A DNA stretch of 64,000 nt, from the IMG/VR virus record IMGVR_UViG_3300003322_000571, positions 1-64,000 of that record; one strand, given 5' to 3'. The notes beneath the pieces were generated by a model, which searched no databases, was not told the DNA's origin, and saw only the letters and a program-made list of their open reading frames with translations. How positions within the stretch are numbered: the first letter of the stretch is position 1; every line of letters begins with the position of its first letter. Made by a program: the position numbers and the translations under genes. Below are positions 2,924-60,382 of the stretch, piece by piece.

Positions 2924-2997
2924 TGCGGGGTGGTGTAGCCCGGTAGCACACCAGGCTCATAACCTGGAGGTCAGACGTTCAAATCGTCTCCCCGCAT
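2924..2997 (+). tRNA. tRNA-Met(CAT), initiator-like T-loop
   Basis: CCAGG-CTCATAA-CCTGG; TTCAAAT loop. Confidence 0.9.
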
Positions 2998-3286
2998 CAA
3001 AGTGAGCTTTGAAGGTTAGTAACCGAGACACCCTTCTTTATGACACTTAAACTGCTGACAAAGTCGATAAATTCCTTCTCAGGATGTGCAGTTGTCAAGG
3101 TTCACCCCCAAACAGTCTCAGTCCTGCTAATGACTGAGTGGTGGAGGCCGTAACTGTGAAATCAGTTTGCGCCCTACGGTTGCAGAGGACGTCTTTCTCT
3201 GAAAGTCACTGGAAAGAGCTTGCTCGCCGGTTAAAGTGACATACGTCGTGATAACCTATTCGACGAACAATTTAAAGGGGTTTGAT

Positions 3287-3535
3287 ATGTGGAATTTGTA
3301 CTTGTGGATCTGTGGACTGATCGCGTTGTGGGCTTTTGGCTCAGGGATCGTTCAAGACGTCCGTCAAGTATTCCATACGCCAGACCTTGATTTCGATGAG
3401 GACGACGAGACGTACTACAATACGACCGATCCGTTCTTCTGGATGTTTGGTTTTCTGGTCAGTTTCCCCGTCGTAAACTTGATCATCTTGGGATTGATTA
3501 TTTTGTCGGTCGTGTTCAGAAAAGAGACGGTGTAA
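3287..3535 (+). CDS. hypothetical membrane protein
   Basis: Two hydrophobic segments; RBS. Confidence 0.6.
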   Translation: MWNLYLWICGLIALWAFGSGIVQDVRQVFHTPDLDFDEDDETYYNTTDPFFWMFGFLVSFPVVNLIILGLIILSVVFRKETV

Positions 3536-3719
3536 TACAAATGAAAAATCTAGCAGAAATACAACAGATGTTTGAACAACTGGTGCCGTCAGCGCCGTTT
3601 AAACTAGACCTGTCGAAGACAGACGATAAGTATACAGATCCTCAGACACAACGTTGCTTTCAGCAATTTGCTGAAGGTTACTTTGATGGATACGTTGAAG
3701 CTGATCTGGTGTAATGTAA

Positions 3720-3790
3720 GCGGGCATGGTATAGTGGTTGTGCCTCAGCCTTCCAAGCTGATGAGACCGGTTCGATCCCGGTTGCCCGCT
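3720..3790 (+). tRNA. tRNA-Gly(TCC)
   Basis: GCGGGCA/TGCCCGC, TCAGC-CTTCCAA-GCTGA. Confidence 0.95.
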
Positions 3791-3814
3791 CAAATATAAC
3801 ATAAGGTTGCATAT

Positions 3815-4081
3815 ATGATCGGTGACAATTTTGTCCAGCACAAAGATGGTGGTTTGTATTCGATTCTCGCTGTAGGGAAAAGTACTGTTGATCAATCGGA
3901 ACACATCATTTACGTTCACTTGTATCCATTTGAACGTCAAGTGTGGATTCGTCCGATCGAAGAATTCACCGAAGAACGTTTTACGGTTCTAACGCAGGAG
4001 CAAGGCGTTGCGGTGTTGAACCGCGACCGAGAACAGTTCCAAGCAGAAATTACTGCGAACAAGAAAGCTCGTAAGGGCTAA
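3815..4081 (+). CDS. DUF1653-like protein
   Basis: HKDGGLY...IIYVHL...VWIRPIEEF. Confidence 0.65.
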   Translation: MIGDNFVQHKDGGLYSILAVGKSTVDQSEHIIYVHLYPFERQVWIRPIEEFTEERFTVLTQEQGVAVLNRDREQFQAEITANKKARKG

Positions 4082-4093
4082 ATAGGTTTAATT

Positions 4094-4176
4094 GCGGGTA
4101 TAGCTCAGTTGGTAGAGCACCGGTCTTCCAAACCGGAGGCGAATAGTTAACGCAGGTTCGAATCCTGTTGCCCGCT
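4094..4176 (+). tRNA. tRNA-Gly(TCC) with an enlarged variable loop
   Basis: CCGGT-CTTCCAA-ACCGG; variable region of about 15 nt. Confidence 0.85.
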
Positions 4177-4191
4177 CAAATGGAGAAATCC

Positions 4192-4620
4192 ATGATGGAA
4201 TTTGCGCATAACGGTACTGGCATTGTTCGGTACGATCCTCATCGCGGCACGATGAAGTCTAACACGAAGAATTGGTGCGTAATTGACGTTGATCGCGAGA
4301 TCACTCGGTACAACCGGTTCTGGCTTCAACGTGAGAAGCACATCATTCTGCAGCAGCCTGCTTGGGACGCTCACATCTCGGTTGTTCGAGGTGAAAGGCT
4401 TAGCCCCAAAGCACAAAAGCTGTGGAAGAAGTACGAAGGGAAGCGTGTTCCTATTCGGTATGAGCATGGTGATATCCAAATGTCCAAGGACCAAGATCAG
4501 CCTGGTTGGTTCTATTGGATTCGTGTTGACTGCCCGTTCGTGGACGAAATTCGTCAAGAGTTGGGGTTGATCACGAGTTGGAAGTATCATCATATTACGA
4601 TCGGTAGAACTTACTACTGA
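4192..4620 (+). CDS. putative 2H phosphoesterase
   Basis: Two Hx(S/T) motifs: AHISVV and HHITIG. Confidence 0.5.
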   Translation: MMEFAHNGTGIVRYDPHRGTMKSNTKNWCVIDVDREITRYNRFWLQREKHIILQQPAWDAHISVVRGERLSPKAQKLWKKYEGKRVPIRYEHGDIQMSKDQDQPGWFYWIRVDCPFVDEIRQELGLITSWKYHHITIGRTYY

Positions 4621-7901: not shown

Positions 7902-8378
7902 ATGGCAGACAAAATTACCAAAGAGAAGATTGAAGCAGTTGTATCCGATTGCCAATCTTTTAGAGAGTTAACGATCAAACTTGGCCGAGCGCCGTTAGGC
8001 GGAAACATCTCAGAGATGAAACGCAGGTGTATCAAACTGGGAATCGACACGTCCCATATGCTTGGGAAATCTCATGCTAAGGGAAGTACATCTAACAAAA
8101 GACGAACACCCGCTGAGATATTGGTGGAACGTGATCGATTGCAAGGACGTGCACCTATTGAACAGTTACGTAGAGCACTAAAAGAAAGTGGTGTACAGTA
8201 TCAATGTCAAGTATGTTCGTTAAAAGATTGGAACGGTAAGCCGTTAACTTTACACATCGATCACATAGATGGCCAATACTGGAACTGTAGATTGACGAAT
8301 TTGAGGTACATTTGTCCTAATTGTCATTCGCAGACACCCACGTATTGTGGCAAAAACGTTAATGCCCACGTATGCTAA
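7902..8378 (+). CDS. HNH homing endonuclease
   Basis: CQVC...LHIDHIDG...NLRYICPNCHSQT. Confidence 0.9.
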   Translation: MADKITKEKIEAVVSDCQSFRELTIKLGRAPLGGNISEMKRRCIKLGIDTSHMLGKSHAKGSTSNKRRTPAEILVERDRLQGRAPIEQLRRALKESGVQYQCQVCSLKDWNGKPLTLHIDHIDGQYWNCRLTNLRYICPNCHSQTPTYCGKNVNAHVC

Positions 8379-9889: not shown

Positions 9890-9961
9890 ACCTCTTTAGT
9901 TCAGTGGAAAGAACGCGGTCTTCCGAAGTCCGAGGCACAAGTTCGATTCTTGTAAGAGGTA
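9890..9961 (+). tRNA. tRNA-Arg(CCG)
   Basis: ACCTCTT/AAGAGGT; loop TT-CCG-AA. Confidence 0.9.
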
Positions 9962-10416: not shown

Positions 10417-11076
10417 ATGCCTGCACCCATCACAGACGTTATCTTCGTTGACGTCGACGGCCCAATGATTCCTCAACGGGCTGCATATCTCCCCTTCCAA
10501 TCCAAACGTTACGATGCATTCGATCCTTGTGCATCGTCGCTGCTGCTTCGTCTAATTGAAGACGCACAAGAAGCTGACCGTGTGATCAAGATCGTTGTGT
10601 CTAGCACGTGGCGAAAGCTTGGACGTGCTGCTTGCGATCAACTGTTTGAACAGAATGGAATTGATCCGTCGCATTTCCATGATGACTGGGCTACACCGAC
10701 AAAAATGTCGGCAACACGGACAGACGAAATTCTGTTGTGGCTGCGAGATCATCCAGAAGTGACAACATGGGTTGCACTCGATGATGAACACCTTAGCTGG
10801 GAACATCTGCCGAACGCAATTCAATGCGACTTGTATGATGGTTTCACGTGGCGAAACTACATCGAGTGTCGACTGCTTCTCAATCTTGATGACCCTTCAG
10901 CTCCGTTGAATCAACCATACAACCGTGAGAAATTGGCGTCTCAAGTTGATTTCTTCAAACGTCGTGAGATCACTAGGACGAAACGACGTAGTGAGCCAGG
11001 CTATTATCAGCTGTCTCAGTTTGCCGAACAAGTGTTTCCAATCGTGCGACCTGCACAAGATAAGGACGAGCAATGA
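10417..11076 (+). CDS. HAD-domain protein (Swiss-Army-knife RNA-repair type)
   Basis: IFVDVDG, IVVSSTWR, WVALDD. Confidence 0.8.
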   Translation: MPAPITDVIFVDVDGPMIPQRAAYLPFQSKRYDAFDPCASSLLLRLIEDAQEADRVIKIVVSSTWRKLGRAACDQLFEQNGIDPSHFHDDWATPTKMSATRTDEILLWLRDHPEVTTWVALDDEHLSWEHLPNAIQCDLYDGFTWRNYIECRLLLNLDDPSAPLNQPYNREKLASQVDFFKRREITRTKRRSEPGYYQLSQFAEQVFPIVRPAQDKDEQ

Positions 11077-11576
11077 TCAAGTATGTCGAGTGCCCTGAAT
11101 ACCATCTGGAATCGAAGATTTCGGAGTATACGGTGTTCCTGGCTGGTGGGATTTCGAACTGCCACAATTGGCAGGCTGACATCGTTGATATGTTCGAGGA
11201 CACGTACAAGCCTGAAGACTACGACCTCGATCTGATTCTGATCAATCCTCGTCGTGCCAACTTTGATATTGAAGATCCGGACATGAGCCGTGAACAGATC
11301 GAATGGGAGTTCGAGCATCTTCATGCTGTTGACCTGACACTGTTCTGGTTCCCTCCGGAGACGCTGTGCCCGATCACTCTGTTCGAGCTTGGAGCGGCTG
11401 CGTCTGATCCTAATCGTCAGATCGTCGTTGGTTGTCATCCTGACTATGCACGCAAGTTTGATGTTGAAGTCCAACTTGCGTTACAACGTCCTGGAGCGAA
11501 GGTTGTTGTCCATACCTCGCTTGATGGACTGGTCAAGGAAGTCAACGACACACTGCATCTGTTGAACAATTTTTGA
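11073..11576 (+). CDS. nucleoside 2-deoxyribosyltransferase-like protein
   Basis: VFLAGGI, NPRR, QIEWE, PITLFELG. Confidence 0.85.
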   Translation: MIKYVECPEYHLESKISEYTVFLAGGISNCHNWQADIVDMFEDTYKPEDYDLDLILINPRRANFDIEDPDMSREQIEWEFEHLHAVDLTLFWFPPETLCPITLFELGAAASDPNRQIVVGCHPDYARKFDVEVQLALQRPGAKVVVHTSLDGLVKEVNDTLHLLNNF

Positions 11577-11988
11577 GTAAGGTCTAGTCTACCGCTAGCG
11601 AAAGCTAGAGGAAGTTCGGGGCTGCAAAGAGCAAAGGGTGATCGCTCTGTGGGAGGTCTCGTGTGCGTTTAGGACGCCCTTGCGAGTATCGGACAACCGG
11701 GTTGGTGGGAAGACTTGATGGCGTTAGCCTTGGAAATCTCATCATTAGGCACGTATGACCGCTTGTACCACAACGATTCTGCAGCAAGCCAAACAGTTCT
11801 CGATGACTCTGCTCGACGAGGGAACGGGTTGGTGCACCTATGACCTGGTTTGAAAGCCAGCGAGGATAGGATGGTCATGATGGAAATATCCGCGTAACTG
11901 CAGTGAACACTCCGCATGATTGCCTATAGATGAATGGTAGACACAGTGATTTACGTCACTGCACATAACCCCGGCTATTGACCTTACT
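11576..11988 (+). ncRNA. rnpB: RNase P RNA
   Basis: P1 AGTAAGGTC/GACCTTACT; CR-I-like GAGGAAGTTCGGGGCT pairing with CR-V-like ACATAACCCCGGCTA; AGATGAATG. Confidence 0.85.
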
Positions 11989-12350
11989 CAACTTCTACTA
12001 GCCTTAAGATACTGGACAGCGTTCAACAAAATCTGTTCATTATCTTTGGCTAATCCAAGCAGCAGGTTGCATTCGCGGCAAAGGATACCACGAATGTTGC
12101 CCGTTGTATGGCAGTGATCAACTGCATACGTAGACGGATAGTTTGGATCAAGTGCCTTACAACAGATTCCGCACATGCACGACTGAGCAACAGTCATCTG
12201 TTGCTTCTCGTCCAGTGTGATTCCGTATGTTCGAACTAGATGGTCATTAGGTGAAACCTTGACCTTTGGCTTGAACTTGAGAGGTGCAGGTTCCCCGTCA
12301 AGCAGATGGTCTAGTTCTCGATCTTCCTTACGTCGCTTGTAAATACTCAT
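11988..12350 (-). CDS. endonuclease VII-family endonuclease
   Basis: CGIC...VDHCHTTGNIRGILCRECN. Confidence 0.9.
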   Translation of the reverse strand: MSIYKRRKEDRELDHLLDGEPAPLKFKPKVKVSPNDHLVRTYGITLDEKQQMTVAQSCMCGICCKALDPNYPSTYAVDHCHTTGNIRGILCRECNLLLGLAKDNEQILLNAVQYLKASRS

Positions 12351-12386
12351 GCACGTATTTAACGTAGCAATCTAAGGAGATACATT

Positions 12387-12503
12387 ATGGACTTTCTTAT
12401 TGGTGCTATTGCTGGTCTTGCTGTCGGCGCTTGGTTCTCAGAGCCAACGAAGAAGTATCTGACCAAAGCTTGGGATTGGATTAAGGGTTTCTTCACCCCC
12501 TAA
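12387..12503 (+). CDS. small membrane protein
   Basis: AAGGAG RBS; MDFLIGAIAGLAVGAWF. Confidence 0.6.
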   Translation: MDFLIGAIAGLAVGAWFSEPTKKYLTKAWDWIKGFFTP

Positions 12504-12682: not shown

Positions 12683-14170
12683 ATGAATATTCGTCAATCC
12701 GAAGACATCATCCGTCGCCGCGCTGAACTGTGGGCTGAGCTGGAAGCTCTGGAAGATCCCCGCACAATCACGTCGCTTGCCGACAACCCCATCCTCGATA
12801 CTGACAGCTACAAGCTGTGCCACCAGGCAATGTACAACATTCTTGGTGTGACCAAGTCGTTCTCGTACATCGAGCCTCGAATTCACGACAAGACGATGTT
12901 CTTCGCAGGCCTTCAGATGTATCTGAAGCGTATGAAGCCGATCACGCACAAGATGGTTGATCAGGCGAAGGAATTCTTCGGCAAGCACATCATCGGTGGT
13001 GCTGAGATGTTCCCGGAAGCTGACTGGCGCCGTGTCGTCGATGAATTCGGTGGTTATCCTCCGATCAAGATTCGTGCACTGCCGGAAGGTACTGTGATCA
13101 AGTCGCGTAACGCGCTGGTCACGATCGAATGTGACGTTCCTGGCCTCAGCTGGCTCGCTGCGTACTACGAAACTGCGATCCTTCGCGCTGTGTGGTATCC
13201 GACGACCGTCGCTTCGAAGAGCTACGACATTCGTCAAATGCTTCGCAAGTTCGCTGAACAGACGAGCGATCTGTCTGTCGAAGAAGTCGTCATGTTCATG
13301 TACCATGACTTCGGTGCGCGTGGTGTGTCGAGTTTCGAATCTGCCGGCCTCGGTGGCGCAGCCCACATTCTTGCAGGGTCGTGGGGTACTGACACGATCA
13401 CAGGTGCGATCTTCGCCAACGAACTGTACGGCTCTGACATGAGCGCGTTCAGTGTGTTTGCTACGGAACACAGCATCATGACGATGCGTGGCCGTGAAGG
13501 TGAACTGCAGACGGTTCGTGACATCATCAAGACGTACAACAAGGGTCCTGGGACGATCGTGTCGATCGTTTCTGACGGGTACGACATCTTCAATCTTGCT
13601 GACCATTACTGCACGACGCTGAAGCAGGAAATCATCGACGCAGGTATTCGCCTTGTTGTTCGTCCTGACTCTGGTGATGCTGTTGACGTAATCTGCAAGC
13701 TGCTGCTGAAGTTCGAAGCAGCTTACGGCGTGACGGTCAACAGCAAGGGATACAAGGTGTTGAACACCGTTCGTATCCTGCAAGGTGACGGCCTGTCGAC
13801 GGTCGAAGATTTCGCCAAGATCGTTGGTGCGGTCATCGCTCTGGGATTCGGCATTGAGAACCTCGTGTTCGGTATGGGTGGTGGTCTCTTGCAGATCGTC
13901 AACCGTGACCTGTACAAGTTTGCGATGAAGACTTGTGCTGCGGAAGTCAACGGTCAGTGGATCGATGTGTTCAAGGATCCTGTTACTGACCAAGGAAAGC
14001 GCTCGAAGAAGGGTCGTCTGACGGTCGTCAAGCGCAACGATGAAGCGATCACCGTTCGCTTGGAAGAAGTACTGCCGACTGATGTCGAACTGATGCAAGA
14101 CGTGTGGTATGCCGGTACTCTGTACAAGAGCTACAACGTCGAACAGGTTCGTGCAAACAGCCGTGCATAA
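12683..14170 (+). CDS. nadV: nicotinamide phosphoribosyltransferase
   Basis: DTDSYK, HDFGARG, ATEHS, RPDSGD, QGDG, FGMGG, FAMK motifs. Confidence 0.95.
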   Translation: MNIRQSEDIIRRRAELWAELEALEDPRTITSLADNPILDTDSYKLCHQAMYNILGVTKSFSYIEPRIHDKTMFFAGLQMYLKRMKPITHKMVDQAKEFFGKHIIGGAEMFPEADWRRVVDEFGGYPPIKIRALPEGTVIKSRNALVTIECDVPGLSWLAAYYETAILRAVWYPTTVASKSYDIRQMLRKFAEQTSDLSVEEVVMFMYHDFGARGVSSFESAGLGGAAHILAGSWGTDTITGAIFANELYGSDMSAFSVFATEHSIMTMRGREGELQTVRDIIKTYNKGPGTIVSIVSDGYDIFNLADHYCTTLKQEIIDAGIRLVVRPDSGDAVDVICKLLLKFEAAYGVTVNSKGYKVLNTVRILQGDGLSTVEDFAKIVGAVIALGFGIENLVFGMGGGLLQIVNRDLYKFAMKTCAAEVNGQWIDVFKDPVTDQGKRSKKGRLTVVKRNDEAITVRLEEVLPTDVELMQDVWYAGTLYKSYNVEQVRANSRA

Positions 14171-14241
14171 AGTTGCCCACTTCCAGGGTAACCTAGAATA
14201 TAGAGGGGTCAAAAGACCCCTCTTTTTATTTGGAGAATCAA

Positions 14242-14481
14242 ATGGATATTTTCAACAAGCTGACTGCTCACCTGGACGTTGAACAGCTCCGTGAATTGGT
14301 CAAAGCTGCTGCTGAGAAAGAGTCTGACCGTCCCGTCGAATCGATCACTTTTAATGTCGAGAGTCGCTGTGAGGGATACGGAATGAATGAACGAATGGTT
14401 CAAGTGTTCACCGGTGCAACGATCGTGTTTGGTAAACAAACAGAGCAGTCGGTCACTTTTACTCGTGTTCAGAAGAAATGA
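14242..14481 (+). CDS. hypothetical protein
   Basis: GGAG RBS. Confidence 0.6.
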   Translation: MDIFNKLTAHLDVEQLRELVKAAAEKESDRPVESITFNVESRCEGYGMNERMVQVFTGATIVFGKQTEQSVTFTRVQKK

Positions 14482-14563
14482 CCAAATAAATGAACTGTTG
14501 TTAACCTAATTATTTTAGGTTACTATGTTCTACCTTTAATTGCTCTTTAGGAGGAGGTTTTTT

Positions 14564-15220
14564 ATGAAGGCTTTGATTTCTCTTGCGCTCGCACTGGCGG
14601 CAAGCACAGCAGCTGTTGCTGCACCGGTCACTTCGAACGTGACCGTTGACGGTTTCGCGTACGGTTCTCGTTCTGTCGAATATGACACGAACAAGGCTGA
14701 CGGGCTTGCAGCGGCTGGTGGGTTCAACATCACGTCCGGCAACCAGTCGTTCCTGGCGTACTGCATCGAACTGACGCAAAATACGTACTTCGGTGCGATC
14801 AATACGTACACGTCGCTTTCGCCGTCGTCGTACTTCAGCAGCTCGAAGGTGTCGACTGATCTCGGTCGCCTGTTCGGTACGTTCGGCTCGTCGATTAACA
14901 CGACCGACGAGTCTGCTGCTTTCCAGATGGCAGTCTGGGAAATTGTGTACGAGAACGGCAATGGCAACAACAAGTACGATGTGACGAAGGGGTCTGCGCA
15001 GTTCAACAGCTTCTCCGCTGTTGAGACGCAAGCGAACTACTACCTGTCGCATCTCGGCAACACGTCGTCTTCGCTGACCGTGTTCTCGAACGGTAAATAC
15101 CAGGATCTGATCGCCGCCGTCGTGCCGACCAGCCCGGTTCCGGAACCTTCGTCGATCGCTTTGATCGGCGCTGGTCTCGCTGCTCTCGGCTTCGTTGCCC
15201 GCCGTAAGAAGGCAAACTAA
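14564..15220 (+). CDS. PEP-CTERM sorting-domain secreted protein
   Basis: Signal peptide; AYCIEL, AAFQMAVWEI; C-terminal VPEPSSIALIGAGLAALGFVARRK. Confidence 0.92.
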   Translation: MKALISLALALAASTAAVAAPVTSNVTVDGFAYGSRSVEYDTNKADGLAAAGGFNITSGNQSFLAYCIELTQNTYFGAINTYTSLSPSSYFSSSKVSTDLGRLFGTFGSSINTTDESAAFQMAVWEIVYENGNGNNKYDVTKGSAQFNSFSAVETQANYYLSHLGNTSSSLTVFSNGKYQDLIAAVVPTSPVPEPSSIALIGAGLAALGFVARRKKAN

Positions 15221-15247
15221 GTCTGACCTCAACAAGTAGGAGTGTAT

Positions 15248-16069
15248 ATGTACAAGTGCATGTTTGCGTTTGTCGCTCTGATCTTCAGTGCGTCGACGTT
15301 TGCTGCTGCACCGCAGGTCGTTCCTACTTGTTCGTGGGATCAACCTGGACAAAACCGCTTCACCGGTAACGTCATTGCAGCAGTCGACAACTACAAGGAC
15401 ATCCCTGTAGAGACGCGCGAAAAGCTCAAAAAGCGGCTCGCCAATCCAAAGAATTACGACGACAACGTCGTAATCAAGCGTAACGGAATCGTAGGCTCTA
15501 AGCAATACGATTCTGAACTGTCGCAGATGCATTTCGGTGCAAACAAAGTGTGCCAATCGGTCACACGTGACAAGTGGAAGGAAGACCAAGAAGAACGCGG
15601 TCTTGTGTTCTGTGAAGATGGTTACTGCGTCGTGTTGCCGACTGTATGTGGCAATTTGTCGCGTGTCAATCGTCGTGGATCACTTGGCGGTGGAGCTCCT
15701 GGTGAACACGGTGGTGCCCCGTACGAAGAACTTGCTTACATGCCAGCTCTTCCACCGGAATTGACAACGTTTGCAAATCCGCAAGATCCGTTCGAACCTT
15801 TGCCGGTGTTGAATCCACCACTCCTGCCAACTGATCCATTGTTTGGACCAGGACCTGGAGGTGGTTGGAATGGTGGCTGGTACAATCCACCGGCTGTTGT
15901 GTTCTTCCCGCCGGTCATCTTGCCGCCTGGTAAACCACCGTTCGTTGGACCACCAACTCCACCTGTGATCAATCCACCGACTACACCAGTTCCTGAGCCT
16001 GAAACCTGGGCACTGATGATTATCGGAATCGTAGCACTCGTAGCTGCGAAGAAACTGAAGGGCCGCTAA
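15248..16069 (+). CDS. MHFG-family PEP-CTERM protein
   Basis: CSWDQPG, MHFG, ERGLVFC, PTVCGNLSR; C-terminal VPEPETWALMIIG. Confidence 0.88.
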   Translation: MYKCMFAFVALIFSASTFAAAPQVVPTCSWDQPGQNRFTGNVIAAVDNYKDIPVETREKLKKRLANPKNYDDNVVIKRNGIVGSKQYDSELSQMHFGANKVCQSVTRDKWKEDQEERGLVFCEDGYCVVLPTVCGNLSRVNRRGSLGGGAPGEHGGAPYEELAYMPALPPELTTFANPQDPFEPLPVLNPPLLPTDPLFGPGPGGGWNGGWYNPPAVVFFPPVILPPGKPPFVGPPTPPVINPPTTPVPEPETWALMIIGIVALVAAKKLKGR

Positions 16070-16140
16070 GGCCCTTTTTCTTTGCTTGTTGAATTGAATT
16101 ACGGGTCATTCTATACTGGACGTTACTTTCTGGAGATTCC

Positions 16141-16983
16141 ATGTTTGCCAACATCGTCGCTGTTCCGAAGCTGAATGCACCCGATTCACGAGATGTGCTC
16201 GGATTGGTCAGCCATTCCAAACTAGCTGCACACGAACTGGGAATCAACTGCGAAGTATACGATCCGCAAAAGTCCTACGAAGGTACTACACTGTACCTGG
16301 CACTGGGCGGCGATGGCACAATGATCCATGCAATGAAGCTCGCGACCCAACATGGTGATGATGGATATGCGTACGGGATCAACCTTGGTAATGTTGGATT
16401 CTTGACGGAGCTCGGCTTGCGTGAGTTCCCGTACTTTGAACTGTACGACACGTTGATCGATCTGTTTAAGTTCGACAGTATGTACTACGAAGAGAGGATC
16501 GTCATTGAGACGACCGAACCGTATTCGTTGTCGGTCAACGAAGTTTCAATTTCTCAGCTGTATGCTGACGCAATGATTACGTACAGTCTTCGTGTTGATG
16601 GCCAAGATGCAGGCATTCACAAAGCGAACAGTCTTCTGATCGCTACTTCAACTGGTTCCACTGCCTATGCATTGTCGGCGGGTGGCGCTTTGATGACACC
16701 GACGCTGAAAGCGCTTCAGCTTGTTCCCGTCGCTCCAATTAAACTGACAGCTCGTCCGATCATTGTTCCGCACGATGCAAAGATTCAGGTTGAGGTGTGG
16801 GGCGAAGGTATTGCTGTCCGCACTGATGGCCAAGTGTTGATGCGGAGTTCTGATGTGTGGACAGAAAGCAATCCGTTCAAACTGACGCTGACGTCACACA
16901 ACAAGTTCGCCAAGGTTCTGCACAAGAATGGTTGGAATTTCTTTGATGTTCTCGCGGAGAAACTCGGATGGATGAAGAAGTGA
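16141..16983 (+). CDS. nadK: NAD+ kinase
   Basis: LGGDGT, GINLGNVGFL, NE, TSTGSTAYALSAGG. Confidence 0.92.
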   Translation: MFANIVAVPKLNAPDSRDVLGLVSHSKLAAHELGINCEVYDPQKSYEGTTLYLALGGDGTMIHAMKLATQHGDDGYAYGINLGNVGFLTELGLREFPYFELYDTLIDLFKFDSMYYEERIVIETTEPYSLSVNEVSISQLYADAMITYSLRVDGQDAGIHKANSLLIATSTGSTAYALSAGGALMTPTLKALQLVPVAPIKLTARPIIVPHDAKIQVEVWGEGIAVRTDGQVLMRSSDVWTESNPFKLTLTSHNKFAKVLHKNGWNFFDVLAEKLGWMKK

Positions 16984-17576
16984 AGTACGATTGGGAGAAA
17001 CTGCGGGACGAATTCAGTAAACACACAGTTAGGCATCCGACACTGATAGCAGTGATGCCACTTGTAGACCCACCTCGAGTGTTGAGTAGCCAAACTCCAG
17101 GCATTTATCCTGACAGAGACTACAGTCTCAAACGTATGTTGGACGCACCGATTATTGAGTTCAAGGACAAATACCATTTCCTGTCAAACTTCCACACTTC
17201 GGAGTTTGAATGGAGAGGAATTGTTTGGCCTAACGCAGAAGCTGCATACCAATCCGCGAAATCGGATAATCCGGCAGATTGGGAACGGTTCTCGAAGTTC
17301 ACCAATCCTGTTGTAGCAAAACGCGCCGGTAAGCAACTGAACCTTCGTTCAGATTGGGAGAAGGTCAAGATCCGGATTATGCTTGAAATTGTCCTGGCGA
17401 AATTCAGTCAGAACGATGAGTTGAAGCAACTATTGCTTGATACAGGTGACGCTCATCTTGAAGAAGGTAATTACTGGGGCGATAGGATTTGGGGTGTTAG
17501 CCCCGCGGGTTCAGGCCGAGGTCATAACTACCTCGGTCAAATTTTGATGCAAGTGAGGTCATATCTTCGTGGCTGA
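16968..17576 (+). CDS. NADAR (YbiA) family protein
   Basis: FLSNF, EAAYQSAK, KFSQN, WGDRIWG, NYLGQILM. Confidence 0.92.
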   Translation: MDEEVKYDWEKLRDEFSKHTVRHPTLIAVMPLVDPPRVLSSQTPGIYPDRDYSLKRMLDAPIIEFKDKYHFLSNFHTSEFEWRGIVWPNAEAAYQSAKSDNPADWERFSKFTNPVVAKRAGKQLNLRSDWEKVKIRIMLEIVLAKFSQNDELKQLLLDTGDAHLEEGNYWGDRIWGVSPAGSGRGHNYLGQILMQVRSYLRG

Positions 17577-22427: not shown

Positions 22428-22736
22428 ATGGTCTGGAAGCTGTTCCTCGACGACGAGCGTTACCCATCTCAAGAAGGTTGGTTCATTGCACGGAGTTCAC
22501 AAGAAGCAATTGAACTGGTTGAGAAAATTGGAATGCCGTGCGAGATCGCTTTCGATCATGACCTTGGCGGTGACGATACGTCGATCAAGTTTATCTGGTG
22601 GGTAATTGATCAACATTACGACAACGGATTGGAGATTGGTGATCTCCAATATTCGATTCATTCACAGAATCCGATCGGCGCTGCCAACATCAAAGGTTTG
22701 ATGGAGGGGTTCCTCAACGATATCCGGAGTAACTAA
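22428..22736 (+). CDS. cyclic-phosphate-processing receiver domain protein
   Basis: LFLDDER, FDHDLG, HSQNPIG. Confidence 0.85.
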   Translation: MVWKLFLDDERYPSQEGWFIARSSQEAIELVEKIGMPCEIAFDHDLGGDDTSIKFIWWVIDQHYDNGLEIGDLQYSIHSQNPIGAANIKGLMEGFLNDIRSN

Positions 22737-22951
22737 TGGAACTAAAGGTACGAGCAATTGTCCGTGTTAAGCGAGCAAACGTCGAGTTTGCTCCAGGACT
22801 TGGAATTGGTGTCCTTGCAACACAAGAGTTCAAAGTTCAAGTGCCGTTGGGTCGAACTGTGACCGATCACAGAGTTTCAGCTTGCATTCATGATGTTGGA
22901 CAAGCATTGCTTGACGATAGTGTAGAAGTAATCTACGAGGAAGTGAAATGA
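22736..22951 (+). CDS. hypothetical protein
   Basis: Translationally coupled ORF. Confidence 0.6.
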
Positions 22952-24021
22952 AAATCTACCTTGTCGGCGGTGCAGTTCGCGATATCCTTCTTGGTCTTGA
23001 GCCGAAGGATCGTGACTACGTCGTTGTTGGTGCAACTCCTGAAGATATGCTCGCTAAGGGCTTTTCGAAAGTTGGTGCATCGTTTCCTGTGTTCCTTCAT
23101 CCTGAAACTGGTGAAGAGTACGCTCTTGCACGTACCGAACGGAAGACGGGCGTTGGTTACAACGGGTTTGACGTGACGTTCGATACGTCTATCACTCTGG
23201 AAGATGACCTTCGTCGTCGTGATCTGACGATCAATTCAATGGCAATGGACCTCGAAACGAACGAGATCATTGATCCGTTCGGTGGTCAAAGTGATCTCAA
23301 GCGAAAGATCCTCCGTCATACAAGTGAAGCGTTTGCTGAGGATCCGGTTCGTGTTCTTCGTACTGCTCGGTTCGCAGCTCGGTACGGGTTTGATGTGTCA
23401 GAAACGACACTGGAGCTGATGGAACAGGTCGCTCCAGAACTTGACCATGTTCCTGCGGAACGAATCTTCGCCGAGTTCCAGAAGGGCTTGATGGAGAAAG
23501 CTCCGTACAGGATGCTTGGTGTACTGGTACAGTGCTACGCTGACAACGTTAAGTCGGTTGAACCATTTCTTCGTGGTGATCATGATCTGTGGCAACGTCT
23601 GCACCTTGTTCGAGATGATACGCCGTTGCATGTTCGGTTTGCTCTGATCGCTCGTCGCTTCCACCCGGAAGATTACGAAGCGTGCAAGATTCCTACAGAC
23701 CTTGCACGAGTGGCGAAAGCAGTTCAGTCGCACTTCTATCAATGGAAGGGACTTCGTACTTGCTCTGATGAACGGTTCGTTAAGATGTGTGACAGATACC
23801 GTGCTTTCAGCAACCCGGACTTCTTCCAGCAAGTGCTCGATGTATTTGAATTCATTGAACATCCGTACGCGATCAAAGGTGTATGGCGTGAACCTATCAA
23901 CGAACGTCTGGCGTTGGCAACGAGCATCGATGCTGCAACAATTGTTGCTAGTCTGCCGATTAAAGACGGCAAGTTGATTCAGGCGAAGATTCACGAAGCA
24001 CGTCTTGCCGCAATGAAGTAA
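22948..24021 (+). CDS. cca: tRNA nucleotidyltransferase (CCA-adding enzyme)
   Basis: [40 protein letters not shown]. Confidence 0.95.
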
Positions 24022-40276: not shown

Positions 40277-40349
40277 GGGGGATTAGCTCAGCTGGGAGAG
40301 CGACGGATTTGCAATTCGTAGGTCAGGAGTTCGATCCTCCTATCCTCCA
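40277..40349 (+). tRNA. tRNA-Ala(TGC)
   Basis: Canonical; G3:U70. Confidence 0.93.
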
Positions 40350-41138: not shown

Positions 41139-41350
41139 ACATGAAACTGGTTGAAGTCACCGGAACTATCCCTGCAGGCTCGTATCCAGCTGTATGCAGC
41201 GGATACGTGTCTGAGTTCAAAGTGAACGGTCAAACATACCGTGCGAAATTCAAGATTGGAGTTCGCGGTATCAACATTCAAGACACCGTGACGGTTACCC
41301 CTGAAGGGATTACGTCGCAGCATCTTGGCGCCAACGGTATTATCGTTTAA
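41135..41350 (+). CDS. hypothetical protein
   Basis: Coupled ORF. Confidence 0.6.
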   Translation: MNMKLVEVTGTIPAGSYPAVCSGYVSEFKVNGQTYRAKFKIGVRGINIQDTVTVTPEGITSQHLGANGIIV

Positions 41351-41763
41351 TGTCGTACGCAAAAAAGACGATCACTTGTATCTATTGCGGTTGTACCAAA
41401 GATCAAAGCCGGCATTCTGCCAAAGGTAAGTACTGTTCCAATAAATGTCAACAGGACTTCCAATATCAACAATACGTCACTCAATGGAAATCAGGCGAGG
41501 TGACTGGTCTCGTTGGTAAGACAGGTATTAGTTACCATGTTCGCAGATATGTGTTTGCGAAATATAACAACAAGTGCTGTATTTGTGGCTGGCGTGAACA
41601 GCATCCCACAGATGGTTCAATCCCTCTAGAAATTGATCATATTGATGGCGATTGGACTAACACCATTGAGAGTAATCTTCGGTTGCTATGTCCCAACTGT
41701 CATAGTTTGACCCCTACATATAAAAGTAGGAATCGTGGTAAGAGTTCACGAACGTATAAATAA
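41350..41763 (+). CDS. HNH endonuclease
   Basis: YCSNKC, LEIDHIDG, NLRLLCPNCH. Confidence 0.9.
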   Translation: MSYAKKTITCIYCGCTKDQSRHSAKGKYCSNKCQQDFQYQQYVTQWKSGEVTGLVGKTGISYHVRRYVFAKYNNKCCICGWREQHPTDGSIPLEIDHIDGDWTNTIESNLRLLCPNCHSLTPTYKSRNRGKSSRTYK

Positions 41764-46936: not shown

Positions 46937-47007
46937 GCCTCAGCCGATGGAGCGGCGGGACGCCTTCTAAGCGACCTTTGATGGGGGTTCGAATCCCTCC
47001 TGAGGCA
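46937..47007 (+). tRNA. tRNA-Arg(TCT), short D-arm
   Basis: GCCTCAG/CTGAGGC; loop CT-TCT-AA. Confidence 0.8.
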
Positions 47008-47022
47008 CATAAGGAGATAAAT

Positions 47023-47238: not shown

Positions 47239-47919
47239 ATGAAGTACATCGTTGAAGTTCATGCCGCTGAGGGCGGTGACGATAGCAAGTTGTTCGTGAA
47301 GGACCTTGCGCAAGCATACACGAAGTTGTTCCAGCGTTTTGGCTGAAAGCACCGGGTTGTTGTAGAGAAGGACGGCGAAATTCACATTGAAGTGAGTGGC
47401 TCTGATCTATCACAGCTCAACAATGAACCCGGTGGCCATAGGCTTCAACGAATTCCTCCCACGGAAAAACGTGGAAGAGTTCATACGTCCACTGTTACTG
47501 TCGCTGTAATCGATACAGATAGCTATGCGACACCTGATTTTACTCAGATTGATCCTAGTGATTTCAAGATTGAGTGGTACTCAGGAACAGGTGCAGGTGG
47601 ACAGCACCGTAATAAACATCAGAACAGTATCCGACTTACACACGTACCTACGGGGTTAGTTGAGACGTCTCAGTGCCGGAGCCGGGAGGCTTCTCACAAA
47701 GAGGCGATGAGTCAGATGGTGAAGCGGTTGCAGAGCAATGCAAGTTACCAGCGTGTAGTAGCTCAATCAATTGAGCGTAAGCGTCAAATGGGAACAGGTA
47801 TGCGAGGTGACAAAATTCGTACATATCGCTTCCAAGATGATGTTGCCACAGACAACCGTACAGGTAAGAAGGTCAACCTTTCAAAAGTAATGAACGGACA
47901 ATTCGACCTTCTTTGGTAA
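47239..47919 (+). CDS. class-I release factor (RF1-like PxT motif, lacking domain 1) with an in-frame TGA at codon 36
   Basis: EVHAAEGGDDSKLF...FG*K; EPGGHRLQRIPPTEKRGRVHTS; GAGGQHRNK; KIRTY. Confidence 0.9.
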
Positions 47920-57962: not shown

Positions 57963-58275
57963 GTTCTGGGGCATTACATGCTTCGTGTTTGTCGCTCTGT
58001 TTACTTTCAGAGCGTACAAACTTGAACCAGGCAAAGGACAATCACCGCGTAGCTCGATCATTGAAGCTTGGGTCAACATCGTCATTGGTTTCACTATCAG
58101 TTACGGTGCGAACTTCCTAATTTTCCCTCTAATTGGCTCGCATCTAACCGCTGGACAGAACTTTTGGATTGGCTGGATTTACACAGCAATTTCAATTGTT
58201 CGTCAGTATACAATTAGGCGTTGGTTCAACGACCACGTCCACAATATGGCACTGCGCTTGGCAGGAGACAAATGA
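57949..58275 (+). CDS. membrane protein
   Basis: QSPRSSIIEAWVN...SIVRQYTIRRWFN. Confidence 0.7.
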   Translation: MWSLEFWGITCFVFVALFTFRAYKLEPGKGQSPRSSIIEAWVNIVIGFTISYGANFLIFPLIGSHLTAGQNFWIGWIYTAISIVRQYTIRRWFNDHVHNMALRLAGDK

Positions 58276-58823
58276 TTTACTTGTTTTTAGATACGGAGTT
58301 CACCTCGTTTGAACAACCAGAGCTGATCTCCATTGGCATCGTTTCGGAAGACGGTCAACATGAATTCTACCGTGAAGTGTCCGACCACAATGCGTATAAA
58401 CGTAGCCAGTTCGTCAAGGACGTCGTCATCCCGTTGTTGTTCAACGACTACGCAACAAGCATGATTCGTGAGTACGTTGCTATGGATCTCAACAAGTGGA
58501 TCGATAGCCTCCCAACCGATCAAGTGACAATTGTTGTTGATTATCCTGGTGACTGGCATCTCGTTAAGCCATTGCTTGATAAGGTGTCTGAGCGACGCGT
58601 TAAGATCAATGCTGAGATGCGTAATCACTCGTTCCTTGCTGCTGCACGGTACCGAGCTGTTGATGTCTCGCCTGAAAAGACATTGGAAGCAATGTTCGTG
58701 ATGGAGGAGTCTGAAGAGGCTTACTTCAAGACAGATCCTCGTCAACATCACGCTTTGGTCGATGCACGAGCAATGCGTGCTGGATGGATTGCAGCTTTGG
58801 AGGTTCTCAATGGACAGCAATAA
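58272..58823 (+). CDS. DEDDh 3'-5' exonuclease
   Basis: FLDTEF, LISIGIV, HHALVDA. Confidence 0.88.
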   Translation: MIYLFLDTEFTSFEQPELISIGIVSEDGQHEFYREVSDHNAYKRSQFVKDVVIPLLFNDYATSMIREYVAMDLNKWIDSLPTDQVTIVVDYPGDWHLVKPLLDKVSERRVKINAEMRNHSFLAAARYRAVDVSPEKTLEAMFVMEESEEAYFKTDPRQHHALVDARAMRAGWIAALEVLNGQQ

Positions 58824-59766
58824 ACTACTAGGAGGCTTTTATGGCCTCGTTCTTGGTGATGCTGTTGGTGTTCCGTTTGAATTTCAACAGCCGCGCCAAC
58901 TACCGCCGCTGTCAAAAATCGACATTGTGATGGCTGATGTTCCCAAGTTCACCAAAACATATCCGCAAGTCCCGTACGGTACCTGGTCCGATGACACAGC
59001 ATTGTCATTGTGTCTTCTTGATGCGTTGCTTGATTTTACCGAGCCGGAGATGTGGCACGGCGACTTTGTCGAGAATATGCAAAATTGGCGATTCCATGGC
59101 AAATTTACTCCGTATAACGAGAAGAAATTTGACATTGGGTTGCAGACTGCCATGGCATTGACTGAACTGGAAGACGGATTGAGTATTCAGGCGCGTGTGG
59201 ACGGCCCAGATCGTTGTGGAAACGGTGCTTTGATGCGTAGCCTTCCAGTTGCCCTCGTGTATGCTTACGTACCAGACCACGACGTTCGTGCAAACTTAAT
59301 TGCCAATGTTACACTCGATCACGTCAATGCTACCCACGCGAACATGATGAGCAAGATTGTCAGTTTGGCGTATACGTTGCTGGCATCATATCTTCTCGAT
59401 GGAGTGTATTGGTTCGATGCCATTGATCTGGCGCTTGATAAGACCGAACAACTTCTTGGTGAAGCTTATAAGGATGACATGTTGAAGTTCCGAGCTTATG
59501 AGCATCGTGAACCAACAGGAACAGGCTACTCTGTTGATACATTCTGGTCTGCGATTTATGCATTGAAGGCTGGTTCAGACTTCCGTACAACGATTCAGCA
59601 TGCTATTTCACTTGGCAACGATACAGACACAACTGCATGCGTTGCTGGTGGACTCGCGGGGATTATCTACGGGTTTGATCGTCTTCCTGTTGATTGGCTT
59701 GCACATCTTCGCGATAAGCAACAAATTGATCAATATGCTCAGCGACTACTAATTATCTCACTATGA
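58810..59766 (+). CDS. ADP-ribosylglycohydrolase
   Basis: GDAVGVPFEF, WSDDT, GNGALMR, GNDTDT. Confidence 0.93.
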   Translation: MDSNKLLGGFYGLVLGDAVGVPFEFQQPRQLPPLSKIDIVMADVPKFTKTYPQVPYGTWSDDTALSLCLLDALLDFTEPEMWHGDFVENMQNWRFHGKFTPYNEKKFDIGLQTAMALTELEDGLSIQARVDGPDRCGNGALMRSLPVALVYAYVPDHDVRANLIANVTLDHVNATHANMMSKIVSLAYTLLASYLLDGVYWFDAIDLALDKTEQLLGEAYKDDMLKFRAYEHREPTGTGYSVDTFWSAIYALKAGSDFRTTIQHAISLGNDTDTTACVAGGLAGIIYGFDRLPVDWLAHLRDKQQIDQYAQRLLIISL

Positions 59767-59957
59767 AAGACAAAATAGGTCAGAAACTAGCTGTACATGA
59801 CCGCGTAGCGACGACGTTGTATGGTGCTTTGTGCGTTGGAGTTATTACAAAGTTGACAAAGGCGTATGTCTACGTACTAGCCCTTGACGAGACGGCGATG
59901 TTAGCGACCTTTAAGACGACTTCCAGCAACGTGATTAAGATTGGAAACACAGAATGA
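59763..59957 (+). CDS. hypothetical protein
   Basis: Coupled ORF. Confidence 0.55.
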   Translation: MKDKIGQKLAVHDRVATTLYGALCVGVITKLTKAYVYVLALDETAMLATFKTTSSNVIKIGNTE

Positions 59958-60382
59958 TTCTAAAAGAAAAGACACTAATGAGGGTAGATGCCCCTAATCG
60001 TAATATGCGTCAATATCCACGCGAGGTCGTTGAAGCTGCTCTTGCAACGAAAACGACGATGTACGGATTGCTAGGCGAACCGGCAATTGTTGGTGATGAC
60101 GAGGGAACGTTTAAAATTGATGTCCCAACTGCCGAGAACGCTGCTTTTGTTGCTTCCAACTTCAAGTTTGATGGTGACTACGTTGTCTGCGATGTTGAAA
60201 CACTTGATACTCATACAGGACGAATTTTCGAGCAATTGACAACTTTGCCTAAAGGTTGTGGATTCTATCCAGTTCTGACCGTCGGTGGCTATATTGGATC
60301 AACGATGAGTGATGGTGTTCAATTAGTCACGGAGTGGGATTTTATCGTTCCGTACGCAACTGTTATTCCTATGTGGGATTAA
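59954..60382 (+). CDS. degenerate prohead protease (T4 gp21-like) paralog
   Basis: PNRNMRQYPREV, LLGE, LDT.TGR; catalytic His not evident. Confidence 0.55.
   Translation: MILKEKTLMRVDAPNRNMRQYPREVVEAALATKTTMYGLLGEPAIVGDDEGTFKIDVPTAENAAFVASNFKFDGDYVVCDVETLDTHTGRIFEQLTTLPKGCGFYPVLTVGGYIGSTMSDGVQLVTEWDFIVPYATVIPMWD

Follow-up and report, generated by a model that had tools for sequence, protein, structure and literature searches.

RNase P is an RNA enzyme that matures the 5' ends of pre-tRNAs endonucleolytically and works with the protein subunit RnpA in vivo. Bacterial class A RNase P RNA (Rfam RF00010) is typified by E. coli M1 RNA and T. maritima P RNA. Its P4 helix is formed by CR-I and CR-V and carries a bulged U and flanking J3/4 and J2/4 motifs, while its specificity (S) domain is built from a P7-P8-P9-P10 four-way junction, P11-P12(-P13-P14) and CR-II/CR-III. 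In the catalytic (C) domain, the GGU motif of L15 pairs with the 3' RCCA of tRNA (PMC4919922). Shortened forms are also known. Archaeal type T RNase P RNA from Thermoproteaceae (PMC3579882) has a near-complete catalytic domain and a truncated specificity domain, and both type T RNAs and engineered C-domain-only ribozymes (PMC5839562) are catalytic. The divergent RNase P RNAs of CPR bacteria (PMC8172020) are found only by lowering Infernal thresholds below the curated cut-offs, and lack helices such as P12-P14 and P16-P18. These are the sole cellular rnpB genes, and some have lost the L15 GGU/UGG motif. Class B RNase P RNA (Bacillus) has a P15.1 hairpin between P15 and P18 and a P19 between P2 and P4.

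Huge phages encode translation-related RNAs, including tRNA arrays and tmRNA (PMC7162821), but the full text of that study does not mention RNase P. Literature searches, within the papers that could be searched, turned up none describing a phage-encoded RNase P RNA. Here, a 64,000-nucleotide stretch (hereafter the window), covering positions 1 to 64,000 of the 350-kb IMG/VR contig IMGVR_UViG_3300003322_000571, was analyzed. An earlier note had proposed that positions 11576-12350 hold a phage-encoded RNase P RNA with a divergent core, abutted by an antisense EndoVII gene. This observation was confirmed, although the range merges two features, the RNA on the plus strand and the open reading frame (ORF) on the minus strand.

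A divergent class A RNase P RNA

A covariance-model search, which the note had set as a check, matched RF00010 at 11575-11993 over model positions 1-367 with 53.6 bits (E 1.9e-15 in a 1-kb search). The match is far beyond chance but lies below Rfam's gathering cut-off of 100 bits, and therefore the default scan of the window showed only tRNAs. The RNA is a full-length but divergent member of class A, in which P1-P7, P10/P11, P15-P19, the bulged U of P4 and the L15 GGU motif are all present. Its parts and the relevant neighboring genes are as follows.

11573-11992 (+): whole RNase P RNA gene, class A-derived, about 420 nt
11573-11584 (+): P1 5' strand TTGAGTAAGGTC, paired with GACCTTACTCAA at 11980-11991 (12 bp); overlaps the TGA stop (11574-11576) of the upstream ORF
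11587-11593 (+): P2 5' strand GTCTACC, paired with GGTAGAC at 11936-11942 (7 bp)
11595-11608 (+): P3 hairpin CTAGC-GAAA-GCTAG (5 bp, GAAA loop)
11608-11623 (+): CR-I, J3/4 plus the P4 5' strand, GAGGAAGTTCGGGGCT; P4 is AGT(T)CGGGG at 11613-11621 (bulged U at 11616), paired with CCCCGGCT at 11969-11976
11622-11625 (+): P5 5' strand CTGC, paired with GCAG at 11781-11784
11629-11632 (+): P6 pseudoknot 5' strand GAGC (in J5/7), paired with GCTC at 11811-11814 in the P17 loop
11640-11644 (+): P7 5' strand GATCG, paired with CGATT at 11774-11778
11645-11771 (+): reduced S-domain, with a CTCT linker, P10-like GTGG (11649-52)/CCAC (11768-71), P11-like GGTC (11655-58)/GACC (11757-60), a conserved bulge GCTTGTA (11761-67) and an unalignable distal part (11659-11756); no P8 or P9
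11785-11833 (+): J5/15 CAA, P15 (GCC 11788-90/GGT 11831-33), P16 (11797-801/11820-24), P17 (11808-16) and L15 with the GGU motif at 11827-29
11845-11866 (+): extra conserved hairpin between P15 and P18, CTGG-TTTGAAAG-CCAG, followed by the conserved CGAGGA
11866-11927 (+): P18, unusually long (62 nt)
11928-11977 (+): J18/2 AGATGAATG (11928-36), P2 3' strand, P19-like hairpin (11944-61) and CR-V ACATAACCCCGGCTA (11963-77), which holds the P4 3' strand
11988-12350 (-): 120-aa endonuclease VII-family gene, convergent with the RNA
22948-24021 (+): CCA-adding tRNA nucleotidyltransferase gene, context and not part of the RNA

The note had named P1, P3 and a P4 with compensated changes, and every one of these elements is in the sequence. 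Against the class A consensus (GAGGAAAGUCCGGgCu ... ACAGAACCCGGCUUA), three P4 pairs differ on both strands and still pair (A:U to G:C, G:C to U:G, and C:G to G:C). In the RNA, AGU(U)CGGGG pairs with CCCCGGCU through eight standard pairs and the bulged U is kept. The junction motifs GAGGAA (J3/4), AGCAA, AGAUGAAUG (J18/2) and ACA.AAC...GGCUA are shared with the bacterial RNA, and the 3' region matches the consensus uAGAugAAUG ... ACAGAACCCGGCUUA. The note had found the S-domain unrecognizable by eye, and the covariance model does not recognize it either, skipping 148 model positions against 145 nt of sequence. Only CUCU lies between P7 and P10, therefore P8 and P9 are absent, and P12-P14 and CR-II/III are not recognizable. 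The model also places 90 nt, comprising P18 and the extra hairpin, against 24 model positions, and the hairpin has no counterpart in the RF00010 consensus.

A phage lineage with covarying core helices

Homologous elements were found in 24 unique sequences from viral and metagenome contigs (individual loci are given L numbers below), whose flanks do not align. Covariation was counted by script and by RNAalifold. Across 40 core pairs, 88.8% of cells were paired against 26-51% for slid partners, and 22 pairs had double-sided changes. RNAalifold independently recovered P1, P3, P4, P5, P10 and P15-P18, with 30 of 53 pairs compensatory. Conserved G.U pairs (the P4 U.G in 23 of 24, plus P15 and P16) fix the strand. 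By contrast, the single-sequence folding energy was unremarkable (z -1.46) and the complementary strand scored better (z -3.80); this test was uninformative and was not used as evidence.

The individual helices show the same behavior. The window's P1 duplex has an energy of -19.2 kcal/mol, and P1 forms in nearly all members with unrelated sequences, with 7-9 sequences changed on both sides per pair. P2 forms in all members with different sequences (e.g., GACAACC/GGTTGTC and CTCGTC/GACGAG), and P3 pairs have up to 9 double-sided changes. In P4, 5 of 8 pairs show double-sided changes within the family, such as GGCGC/CGCC in L029 and GCGGC/CCGC in L044, while the bulged U is invariant. P5 covaries from G:C to C:G and A:T, and P7 from AUCG/CGAU to ACCG/CGGU. 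P6 has 4 covarying pairs (GAGC/GCUC, GAGU/ACUC in 9 sequences, and AGGU/ACCU in L020). RNAalifold predicted a competing AGAGC/GCUCU hairpin, which was rejected because it has no double-sided changes and is broken in L020, whereas P6 is compensated there. P15 covaries (GCC/GGU, CAC/GUG, UAC/GUA, GUC/GAU), as do 5 P16 pairs and P17, and the GGU lies in a GGGTTG that is invariant in one family alignment (A1). All 4 pairs of the extra hairpin covary; its loop is TTGAAA-like in most members and the hairpin is absent from L044. The basal pairs of P18 covary, although other members have 12-20 nt hairpins here, often with GNRA or UUCG loops. The P19-like hairpin is present in about 9 members.

In the S-domain, P10 covaries (GUGG/CCAC, GUCG/CGAC, GUAG/CUAC) and the P11 stem differs in sequence in every member. 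The distal region is unalignable even within the family, and ranges from a 23-nt hairpin (L033) to about 200 nt (L001). L033 ends P10 in a small hairpin, exactly as described for type T, and the roughly 250-nt forms L005, L015, and L021 probably do likewise. The RNA of the window is not of this S-domain-less kind, as it keeps P11 plus about 100 nt of distal structure, has a full-length 7-bp P2 and the L15 GGU, and is of bacterial class A rather than archaeal lineage. In comparison with the CPR RNAs, the phage family keeps GGU and P16/P17 and loses P8/P9 instead. The extra hairpin and the P19-like hairpin occupy the positions of class B P15.1 and P19, but this similarity is positional only, since the phage RNA keeps the class A hallmarks P6, P16, and P17 and has no P5.1 or P10.1.

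The P4 variant marks a phage lineage. Among 185,579 species genomes it was found in no isolate genome and occurs only on two short metagenome-assembled genome (MAG) contigs, one of them binned into an archaeon; a further hit in a Peribacteria MAG (L053) was a chance match with no RNase P. In a 16-mer scan of viral contigs, about 7 of the 26 hits (L003, L004, L006, L008, L012, L013, and L019) match only the 16-17-mer and look like chance matches, while L007, L017, and L026 match 19-21 nt. Related phage contigs carry canonical, high-scoring RNase P RNAs inside tRNA arrays, and related contigs also carry tmRNA and GOLLD RNA. Moreover, L022 combines a canonical S-domain with the same P4 variant, which shows a continuum from canonical to reduced forms. 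In GenBank phages, blastn of the element and megablast of the surrounding 12 kb gave no match, leaving no cultured relative for comparison.

Genomic context and the antisense endonuclease gene

The RNA lies in a tRNA-rich region with about 30 tRNAs. The note had stated that many tRNAs lack an encoded CCA, and this is correct for 19 of 28. The CCA-adding enzyme gene matches Pfam PolyA_pol and PolyA_pol_RNAbd, PHROG tRNA nucleotidyltransferase (2.7e-104), and NCBIfam CCA addition/repair at 1e-95 over the head domain, the last below the curated cut-off. A candidate 3'-5' exoribonuclease (58221-58823) and RNA-repair modules are also encoded. The RNA thus shares the genomic niche of the translation-related RNAs of huge phages, a large phage with a big tRNA complement and translation or tRNA-repair genes. 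No RnpA protein subunit (PF00825) was found in about 60 ORFs of the window, which covers 64 of the 350 kb, or in the flanks of about 70 related loci. An E. coli RnpA query returned only Enterobacterales sequences, and the resulting narrow profile found nothing in 5,757 six-frame ORFs of the window and all loci, which is a weak negative. No promoter or terminator consensus lies next to the RNA gene. The phage tRNAs look like ordinary bacterial RNase P substrates, with U(-1) in 22 of 28, discriminator A in 20 of 28, and C74, as part of N-C(C)A, in 25 of 28.

The antisense ORF is an intact endonuclease VII-family gene. It matches Pfam Endonuclease_7 (PF02945) at 1.1e-20, with 73.8 bits against a cut-off of 23.6 over 79 of 82 profile positions, and PHROG endonuclease VII at 6e-28. 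The CxxC...DHCH...CxxCN zinc-binding and catalytic motifs are intact, although at 120 aa it is shorter than T4 gp49. Its stop codon (11988-11990) lies inside the 3' strand of P1, so what the note called abutted is in fact a 4-nt convergent overlap. It is the only minus-strand gene in its neighborhood. A 57%-identical homolog sits in the same antisense position, immediately 3' of the RNA, only in L001/L025 out of about 24 family loci. Like phage homing endonuclease genes, it sits beside a highly conserved gene and is patchily distributed among relatives. It is most likely a free-standing homing-type endonuclease that landed there, rather than a functional partner of the RNA, though this role is inferred from position and distribution, and the enzyme may instead resolve junctions for packaging.

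Predicted function and significance

The favored explanation, held with fairly high confidence, is that the gene encodes a functional RNase P RNA of a huge phage, descended from bacterial class A. The transcript would probably be cut out of a read-through transcript of the upstream genes, fold into a complete catalytic domain (P1-P6, P15-P19), and most likely assemble with the host's RnpA, dependence on which is the default assumption. The enzyme would cleave the 5' leaders off the roughly 30 phage tRNAs, and probably off host pre-tRNAs too, which would keep tRNA maturation capacity high during infection. In this view substrates would be held mainly through C-domain contacts (L15 GGU with the 3' N-C(C)A, J5/15 with U(-1), and the protein with the leader), while the usual elbow-reading S-domain module (P8, P9, CR-II/III) is reduced and reshaped. 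The active-site and substrate-contact elements, namely the bulged U of P4, J3/4, J18/2, J5/15, and L15 GGU, are all retained (PMC4919922). On the other hand, the two P4 bases that differ from bacteria correspond to the nucleotides whose phosphates bind the catalytic metals (A50/G51 in T. maritima numbering; PMC4919922). The analysis itself establishes homology, conservation of the structure helix by helix with covariation, restriction to a phage lineage, and the signatures on the substrate side; catalysis, expression, use of host RnpA, co-transcription, and the biological benefit are inferred. The note's interpretation was therefore only partly supported: its central reading holds on the covariance-model hit, the covariation and the phage context, but its proposals of autonomous tRNA maturation and of adaptation to atypical tRNA-like substrates remain conjectures.

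An unlikely alternative is that the RNA is a look-alike rather than a productive enzyme, which would sequester host RnpA and/or pre-tRNAs as a decoy or regulator and thereby shut down or redirect host tRNA maturation. The regions that bind the protein and the acceptor end (P2-P4, J18/2, P15/L15) are the best conserved while the S-domain is degenerate, no phage RnpA was found in the ORFs and flanks searched, and the P4 bases at the metal-binding positions are changed. However, the P4 changes are strictly compensated and the bulged U, J3/4, and J18/2 are invariant, a pattern expected for an active site and not for a mere binding platform. Moreover, the metal contacts at those positions are to backbone phosphates (PMC4919922), related phages carry fully canonical copies in the same genomic setting, and a phage with about 30 tRNA genes needs RNase P activity.

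A decaying remnant of a host rnpB is less likely still. The low Rfam score, missing S-domain, and long insertions in P18 and the distal S-domain could suggest a pseudogene, and some relatives (L011, L027, L030) look rearranged or invaded by endonuclease genes; the ORF inserted in L011 gave nothing in Pfam but was identified as HNH by PHROGs. Nevertheless, 24 unique sequences from unrelated contigs keep every core helix through compensatory changes and keep all junction motifs invariant, indicating purifying selection on structure. The P4 signature is absent from cellular isolate genomes, so this is an old, maintained phage lineage and not a recent capture. An attP-type fragment of a host rnpB was also rejected, because the gene is complete from P1 to P1. 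Least likely is a bacterial gene on a mis-binned or chimeric contig: despite the metagenomic origin and cellular-type auxiliary genes (NAMPT, NAD kinase, RF1 fragment, PTH2, PEP-CTERM proteins), the window holds T4-like prohead protease homologs, a tail-fiber repeat protein, GIY-YIG, HNH, and EndoVII homing-type genes, and 30 tRNAs with duplicated isoacceptors, with no rRNA and no bacterial core gene, and the P4-variant lineage appears on many viral contigs.

A more speculative possibility, which is doubtful on present evidence, is that the lineage is an RNase P with re-engineered substrate recognition rather than a spare copy of the host ribozyme. Having dropped the P8/P9 and CR-II/III elbow-reading module and gained a conserved hairpin between P15 and P18, it would rely on acceptor-end contacts. 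These changes would let it preferentially mature the phage's own precursors, most of which end in N-CA rather than N-CCA, or work when the host enzyme is inactivated or its RNA degraded. The series from canonical (L022) through reduced (the window) to S-domain-less (L033 and the roughly 250-nt forms) would then be a natural minimization experiment on a bacterial ribozyme.

Rfam's gathering cut-off hides these genes, and standard annotation finds only the canonical phage copies. On the practical side, small self-contained RNase P variants are of interest as tools, and the P4 signature GAGGAAGUUCGGGGCU is a handy marker for phage-derived contigs in bins. The lineage offers naturally occurring bacterial-type RNAs whose S-domains shrink progressively, which can be compared directly with engineered C-domain ribozymes and with archaeal type T. 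RNase P is treated as a universal, chromosome-encoded housekeeping ribozyme, and classic phage work on T4 tRNAs assumes that the host enzyme does the processing. A whole phage lineage of virus-encoded RNase P RNAs extends the list of translation-apparatus parts that large phages carry to include a ribozyme.

Identity and genomic setting of the RNA

At gathering thresholds, the default Rfam scan of the 64-kb window reports 28 tRNAs and nothing else. A permissive scan of 11450-12450 gives a single hit, RF00010 (bacterial RNase P class A), at 11575-11993 on the + strand, with a score of 53.6 bits (cut-off 100), an E-value of 1.9e-15 and coverage of model positions 1-367. In the alignment, P1, P2, P3, J3/4, P4, P5, J5/15, P15-P17, L15, J18/2 and CR-V all match the consensus. 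Conversely, the 148 model positions of the specificity domain are skipped against 145 nt of unrelated sequence, and the 24 positions around P18 are replaced by 90 nt. The P1, P3 (CTAGC-GAAA-GCTAG) and P4 strands described in the earlier note were found exactly where it had placed them, and its remark that the S-domain cannot be recognised is also what the model finds. The observation made in that note is confirmed.

The window is phage. The element is 100% identical to IMG/VR contig IMGVR_UViG_3300003322_000571 (350,089 bp), and no nucleotide relative was found among 50,697 GenBank phage records. The window contains 30 tRNA genes by ARAGORN, T4-like prohead-protease homologs, a tail-fibre repeat protein and several HNH, GIY-YIG and EndoVII-type genes. 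It also holds a dense set of tRNA and translation accessories, including a CCA-adding enzyme (22948-24021), two YqeY/GatB-YqeY proteins, PTH2, an RF1 fragment and RNA-repair domains, together with an NAD salvage set. The RNA-repair and end-processing parts are scattered among the tRNAs (4168-4620, 10417-11076, 22428-22736, 58221-58823) and comprise a 2H-SAK phosphoesterase, a HAD-SAK, a cREC cyclic-phosphate-processing receiver domain just upstream of the CCA enzyme, and a candidate Rv2179c-like 3'-5' exoribonuclease. The RF1 fragment is a 175-aa ORF (47392-47919, +) which matches only the C-terminal half of release factor 1 (positions 168-333 of 347, E 1e-45) and lies just downstream of a tRNA-Arg(tct) at 46937-47008; it could be a truncated or split RF1. 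The NAD-related cluster (12683-17576 and 58762-59766) consists of NAMPT, NAD kinase, a NADAR domain protein and an ADP-ribosylglycohydrolase. Two PEP-CTERM-tailed proteins (14540-15220, 15242-16069) sit between them, which hints at an exosortase-bearing Gram-negative host. Further homing-type endonuclease genes (7902-8378, 41350-41763, 60450-61172, 61530-62183(-); two HNH and two GIY-YIG, one of them with NUMOD3) are interspersed with tRNAs and prohead-protease-like ORFs (59954-60382, 62653-63057).

The neighbouring ORF 11988-12350 (-) encodes an intact endonuclease VII-family protein. It is the only minus-strand gene in its neighbourhood and overlaps P1 by 4 nt. Among the related loci (designated L followed by a number), a 57%-identical homolog was found in the same antisense position immediately 3' of the RNA in L001/L025 only, and that is a distant family member. 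In L011 (IMGVR_UViG_3300015608_001197, 2980-3840), an RNase P RNA gene (124 bits) is interrupted or duplicated, with a different nuclease gene inserted into it. Its P1-P4 5' segment occurs twice, flanking a 147-aa HNH endonuclease ORF (3048-3491; HNH, PHROG 5e-23), and the upstream copy pairs better with the 3' P1 and P4 strands. These patterns point to homing-type endonucleases exploiting a conserved RNA gene and not to a functional partnership, although a role as the phage's junction resolvase is not excluded.

Covariation and anatomy

To identify relatives, the 16-mer GAGGAAGTTCGGGGCT was searched in viral contigs, and a second pattern, taken from the conserved block 3' of the S-domain and independent of P4, was searched in viral and metagenome contigs. 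Together these searches gave 24 unique homologous elements, and outside the RNA the loci do not align with the window. On an anchor-based alignment, pair types were counted for 40 proposed pairs in P4, P5, P6, P7, P10, P15, P16 and P17. Of the cells, 88.8% are standard pairs, against 26-51% when the 3' partner is slid by 1-3 columns, and 22 pairs show changes on both sides. Examples are found in P4 (GGGGC/CCCC; GGCGC/CGCC in L029; GCGGC/CCGC in L044; GGGAC/UCCC in L031), P6 (GAGC/GCUC; GAGU/ACUC in 9 sequences; AGGU/ACCU in L020), P7 (AUCG/CGAU, ACCG/CGGU), P10 (GUGG/CCAC, GUCG/CGAC, GUAG/CUAC) and P15 (GCC/GGU, CAC/GUG, UAC/GUA, GUC/GAU). Moreover, P1, P2 and P3 form in essentially every member with unrelated sequences.

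RNAalifold, which knows nothing of RNase P and cannot draw pseudoknots, independently returned P1, P3, P4, P5, P10, P15, P16, P17, a hairpin after P15, and P18 when applied to 21 full-length sequences. In this prediction 30 of 53 pairs were kept through double-sided changes. Its one extra proposal, an AGAGC/GCUCU hairpin, has no double-sided change and conflicts with the well-supported P6. Many conserved G.U pairs (the P4 U.G in 23 of 24 members, plus P15 and P16) would be A.C mismatches on the other strand, which fixes the + strand. Single-sequence thermodynamics does not do so, as z is -1.46 on + and -3.80 on -.

Elements of the RNase P RNA in the window (+ strand)
11573-84 / 11980-91: P1
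11587-93 / 11936-42: P2
11595-608: P3
11613-21 (bulged U at 11616) / 11969-76: P4
11622-25 / 11781-84: P5
11629-32 / 11811-14: P6
11640-44 / 11774-78: P7
11645-48: invariant CUCU linker between P7 and P10
11649-52 / 11768-71: P10
11655-58 / 11757-60: P11, with the conserved 3' bulge GCUUGUA
11659-756: idiosyncratic distal region, predicted to form three hairpins
CAA: J5/15
11788-90 / 11831-33: P15
11797-801 / 11820-24: P16
11808-16: P17
11827-29: L15 GGU
11845-60: conserved extra hairpin (loop UUUGAAAG), followed by CGAGGA
11866-927: P18, 62 nt
11928-36: J18/2
11944-61: P19-like hairpin
11963-77: CR-V

Divergence from class A and a phage-specific lineage

The RNA differs from bacterial class A in four respects. 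First, relative to the consensus GAGGAAAGUCCGGGCU / ACAGAACCCGGCUUA, three P4 pairs are exchanged with full compensation (A:U to G:C, G:C to U:G, and C:G to G:C). The first two are the nucleotides whose phosphates bind the catalytic metal ions in T. maritima (A50, G51), while the universally conserved bulged U (U52) is kept (PMC4919922). In the universal CR-I and CR-V consensus of Chen and Pace, the changed positions are reportedly the variable ones. Second, P8 and P9 are absent. Third, CR-II/III and P12-P14 are not recognisable, and only a recurrent UGAA-like motif is seen in many members. Fourth, a conserved hairpin lies between P15 and P18 and a P19-like hairpin lies before CR-V, which are the positions occupied by P15.1 and P19 in class B. 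Neither the CUCU linker (11645-11648) nor the conserved UUGAAA-loop hairpin plus CGAGGA (11845-11866) has a counterpart in the Rfam class A consensus.

The P4 variant marks a phage-specific lineage with a gradient of reduction. It also occurs in L022, whose RNA scores 141 bits and has a recognisable P7-P12 and the GGGUGAAA motif, as well as in roughly 250-260-nt forms that still score about 63 bits (L005:1004-1253, L015:12723-12972, L021:7648-7897, L018:809-1068). Within the window's own subfamily, L033 (851-1142) reduces everything beyond P10 to a 23-nt hairpin, which is the architecture described for archaeal type T (PMC3579882). These five very short phage RNAs (250-290 nt) keep the C-domain and lose nearly all of the S-domain, and appear to be bacterial-lineage analogues of type T. 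L044 lacks both P18 and the extra hairpin. Other loci seem to contain tandem or nested partial RNase P RNA copies: in L027/L041, a second 5' half follows the first gene in L027, with a fully compensated P4 (AGU(A)UGCCC / GGGCAGCU), and in L030 a mini-copy sits inside the P15-P18 region.

A scan of one genome from each of 185,579 bacterial and archaeal species for the extended P4 signature found three MAG contigs and no isolate. Two of these are real, one being a 3.6-kb contig with a tRNA array and the other a bacterial-type RNA binned into a Nitrososphaerales archaeon, and both look like stray phage fragments. Separately, 12 viral contigs with the ordinary bacterial P4 were found to carry RNase P RNAs of 108-328 bits. 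Several of these are huge contigs (463, 363, 190, 155 and 101 kb) where the gene sits flush inside a tRNA array. In phages with canonical copies (L070:462-1021, L065:8153-8589, L052:1156-1567, L058:3949-4429), the gene lies 0-10 nt from the flanking tRNA genes, which suggests release of the ribozyme by tRNA-processing cuts. Other structured RNAs accompany the related loci, as a GOLLD RNA (L020:4882-5334, 203 bits) lies about 2 kb from the RNase P RNA of L020 and a tmRNA (L011:8239-8603, 99.8 bits) lies in the tRNA array of L011.

In a literature search restricted to open-access papers, which leaves room for an earlier description elsewhere, no paper describing a phage-encoded RNase P RNA was found. 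The huge-phage survey does not mention RNase P in its text (PMC7162821), the 2024 RNase P history review mentions phages only as sources of substrates, and the Bcheck genome survey does not mention phages. The nearest precedent for sub-threshold divergent RNase P RNAs is in CPR bacteria (PMC8172020).

Inferred mechanism and significance

The conserved parts of the RNA are the active site (P4, J3/4, J18/2, CR-V) and the contacts with the acceptor end, where the L15 GGU pairs with 3' RCCA and J5/15 contacts N(-1) (PMC4919922). The phage's 28 tRNA genes (e.g. 2924-2997, 9890-9961, 40277-40349) fit this, as 22 of 28 have U(-1) and 20 of 28 have discriminator A. Nine encode CCA, and 16 of the other 19 have CA directly after the discriminator base (P about 2e-16), that is, N-CA rather than N-CCA. 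The RNA is therefore expected to be a working ribozyme that holds substrates mainly through C-domain contacts plus a protein subunit, with a weakened or altered reading of the tRNA elbow. C-domain-only class A RNA is catalytic at reduced efficiency (PMC5839562). No RnpA was found in about 60 ORFs of the window, which leaves 286 kb of the contig outside the search, nor with a narrow profile in 5,757 ORFs of the window and all loci. Use of host RnpA is the simplest assumption.

No promoter-like or terminator-like site was found at the gene. P1 starts inside the stop codon of the upstream nucleoside deoxyribosyltransferase-like ORF, which suggests co-transcription followed by processing. Unlike the canonical phage copies, the window's gene is not flanked by tRNAs that could punctuate its release, with no tRNA within 1.2 kb.

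The interpretation in the earlier note is thus supported in part. The identity as an RNase P RNA is supported by the analysis, whereas catalysis, the use of host RnpA and the autonomous tRNA maturation and adaptation to atypical substrates that the note proposed are inferences from sequence alone. The RNA represents a phage lineage within an already known kind of RNA, and it is of real interest to RNase P and phage biologists. In view of the copies with the ordinary bacterial P4 on other viral contigs, RNase P RNA genes are a recurrent cargo of large phages, and the window represents the divergent branch that standard thresholds miss.
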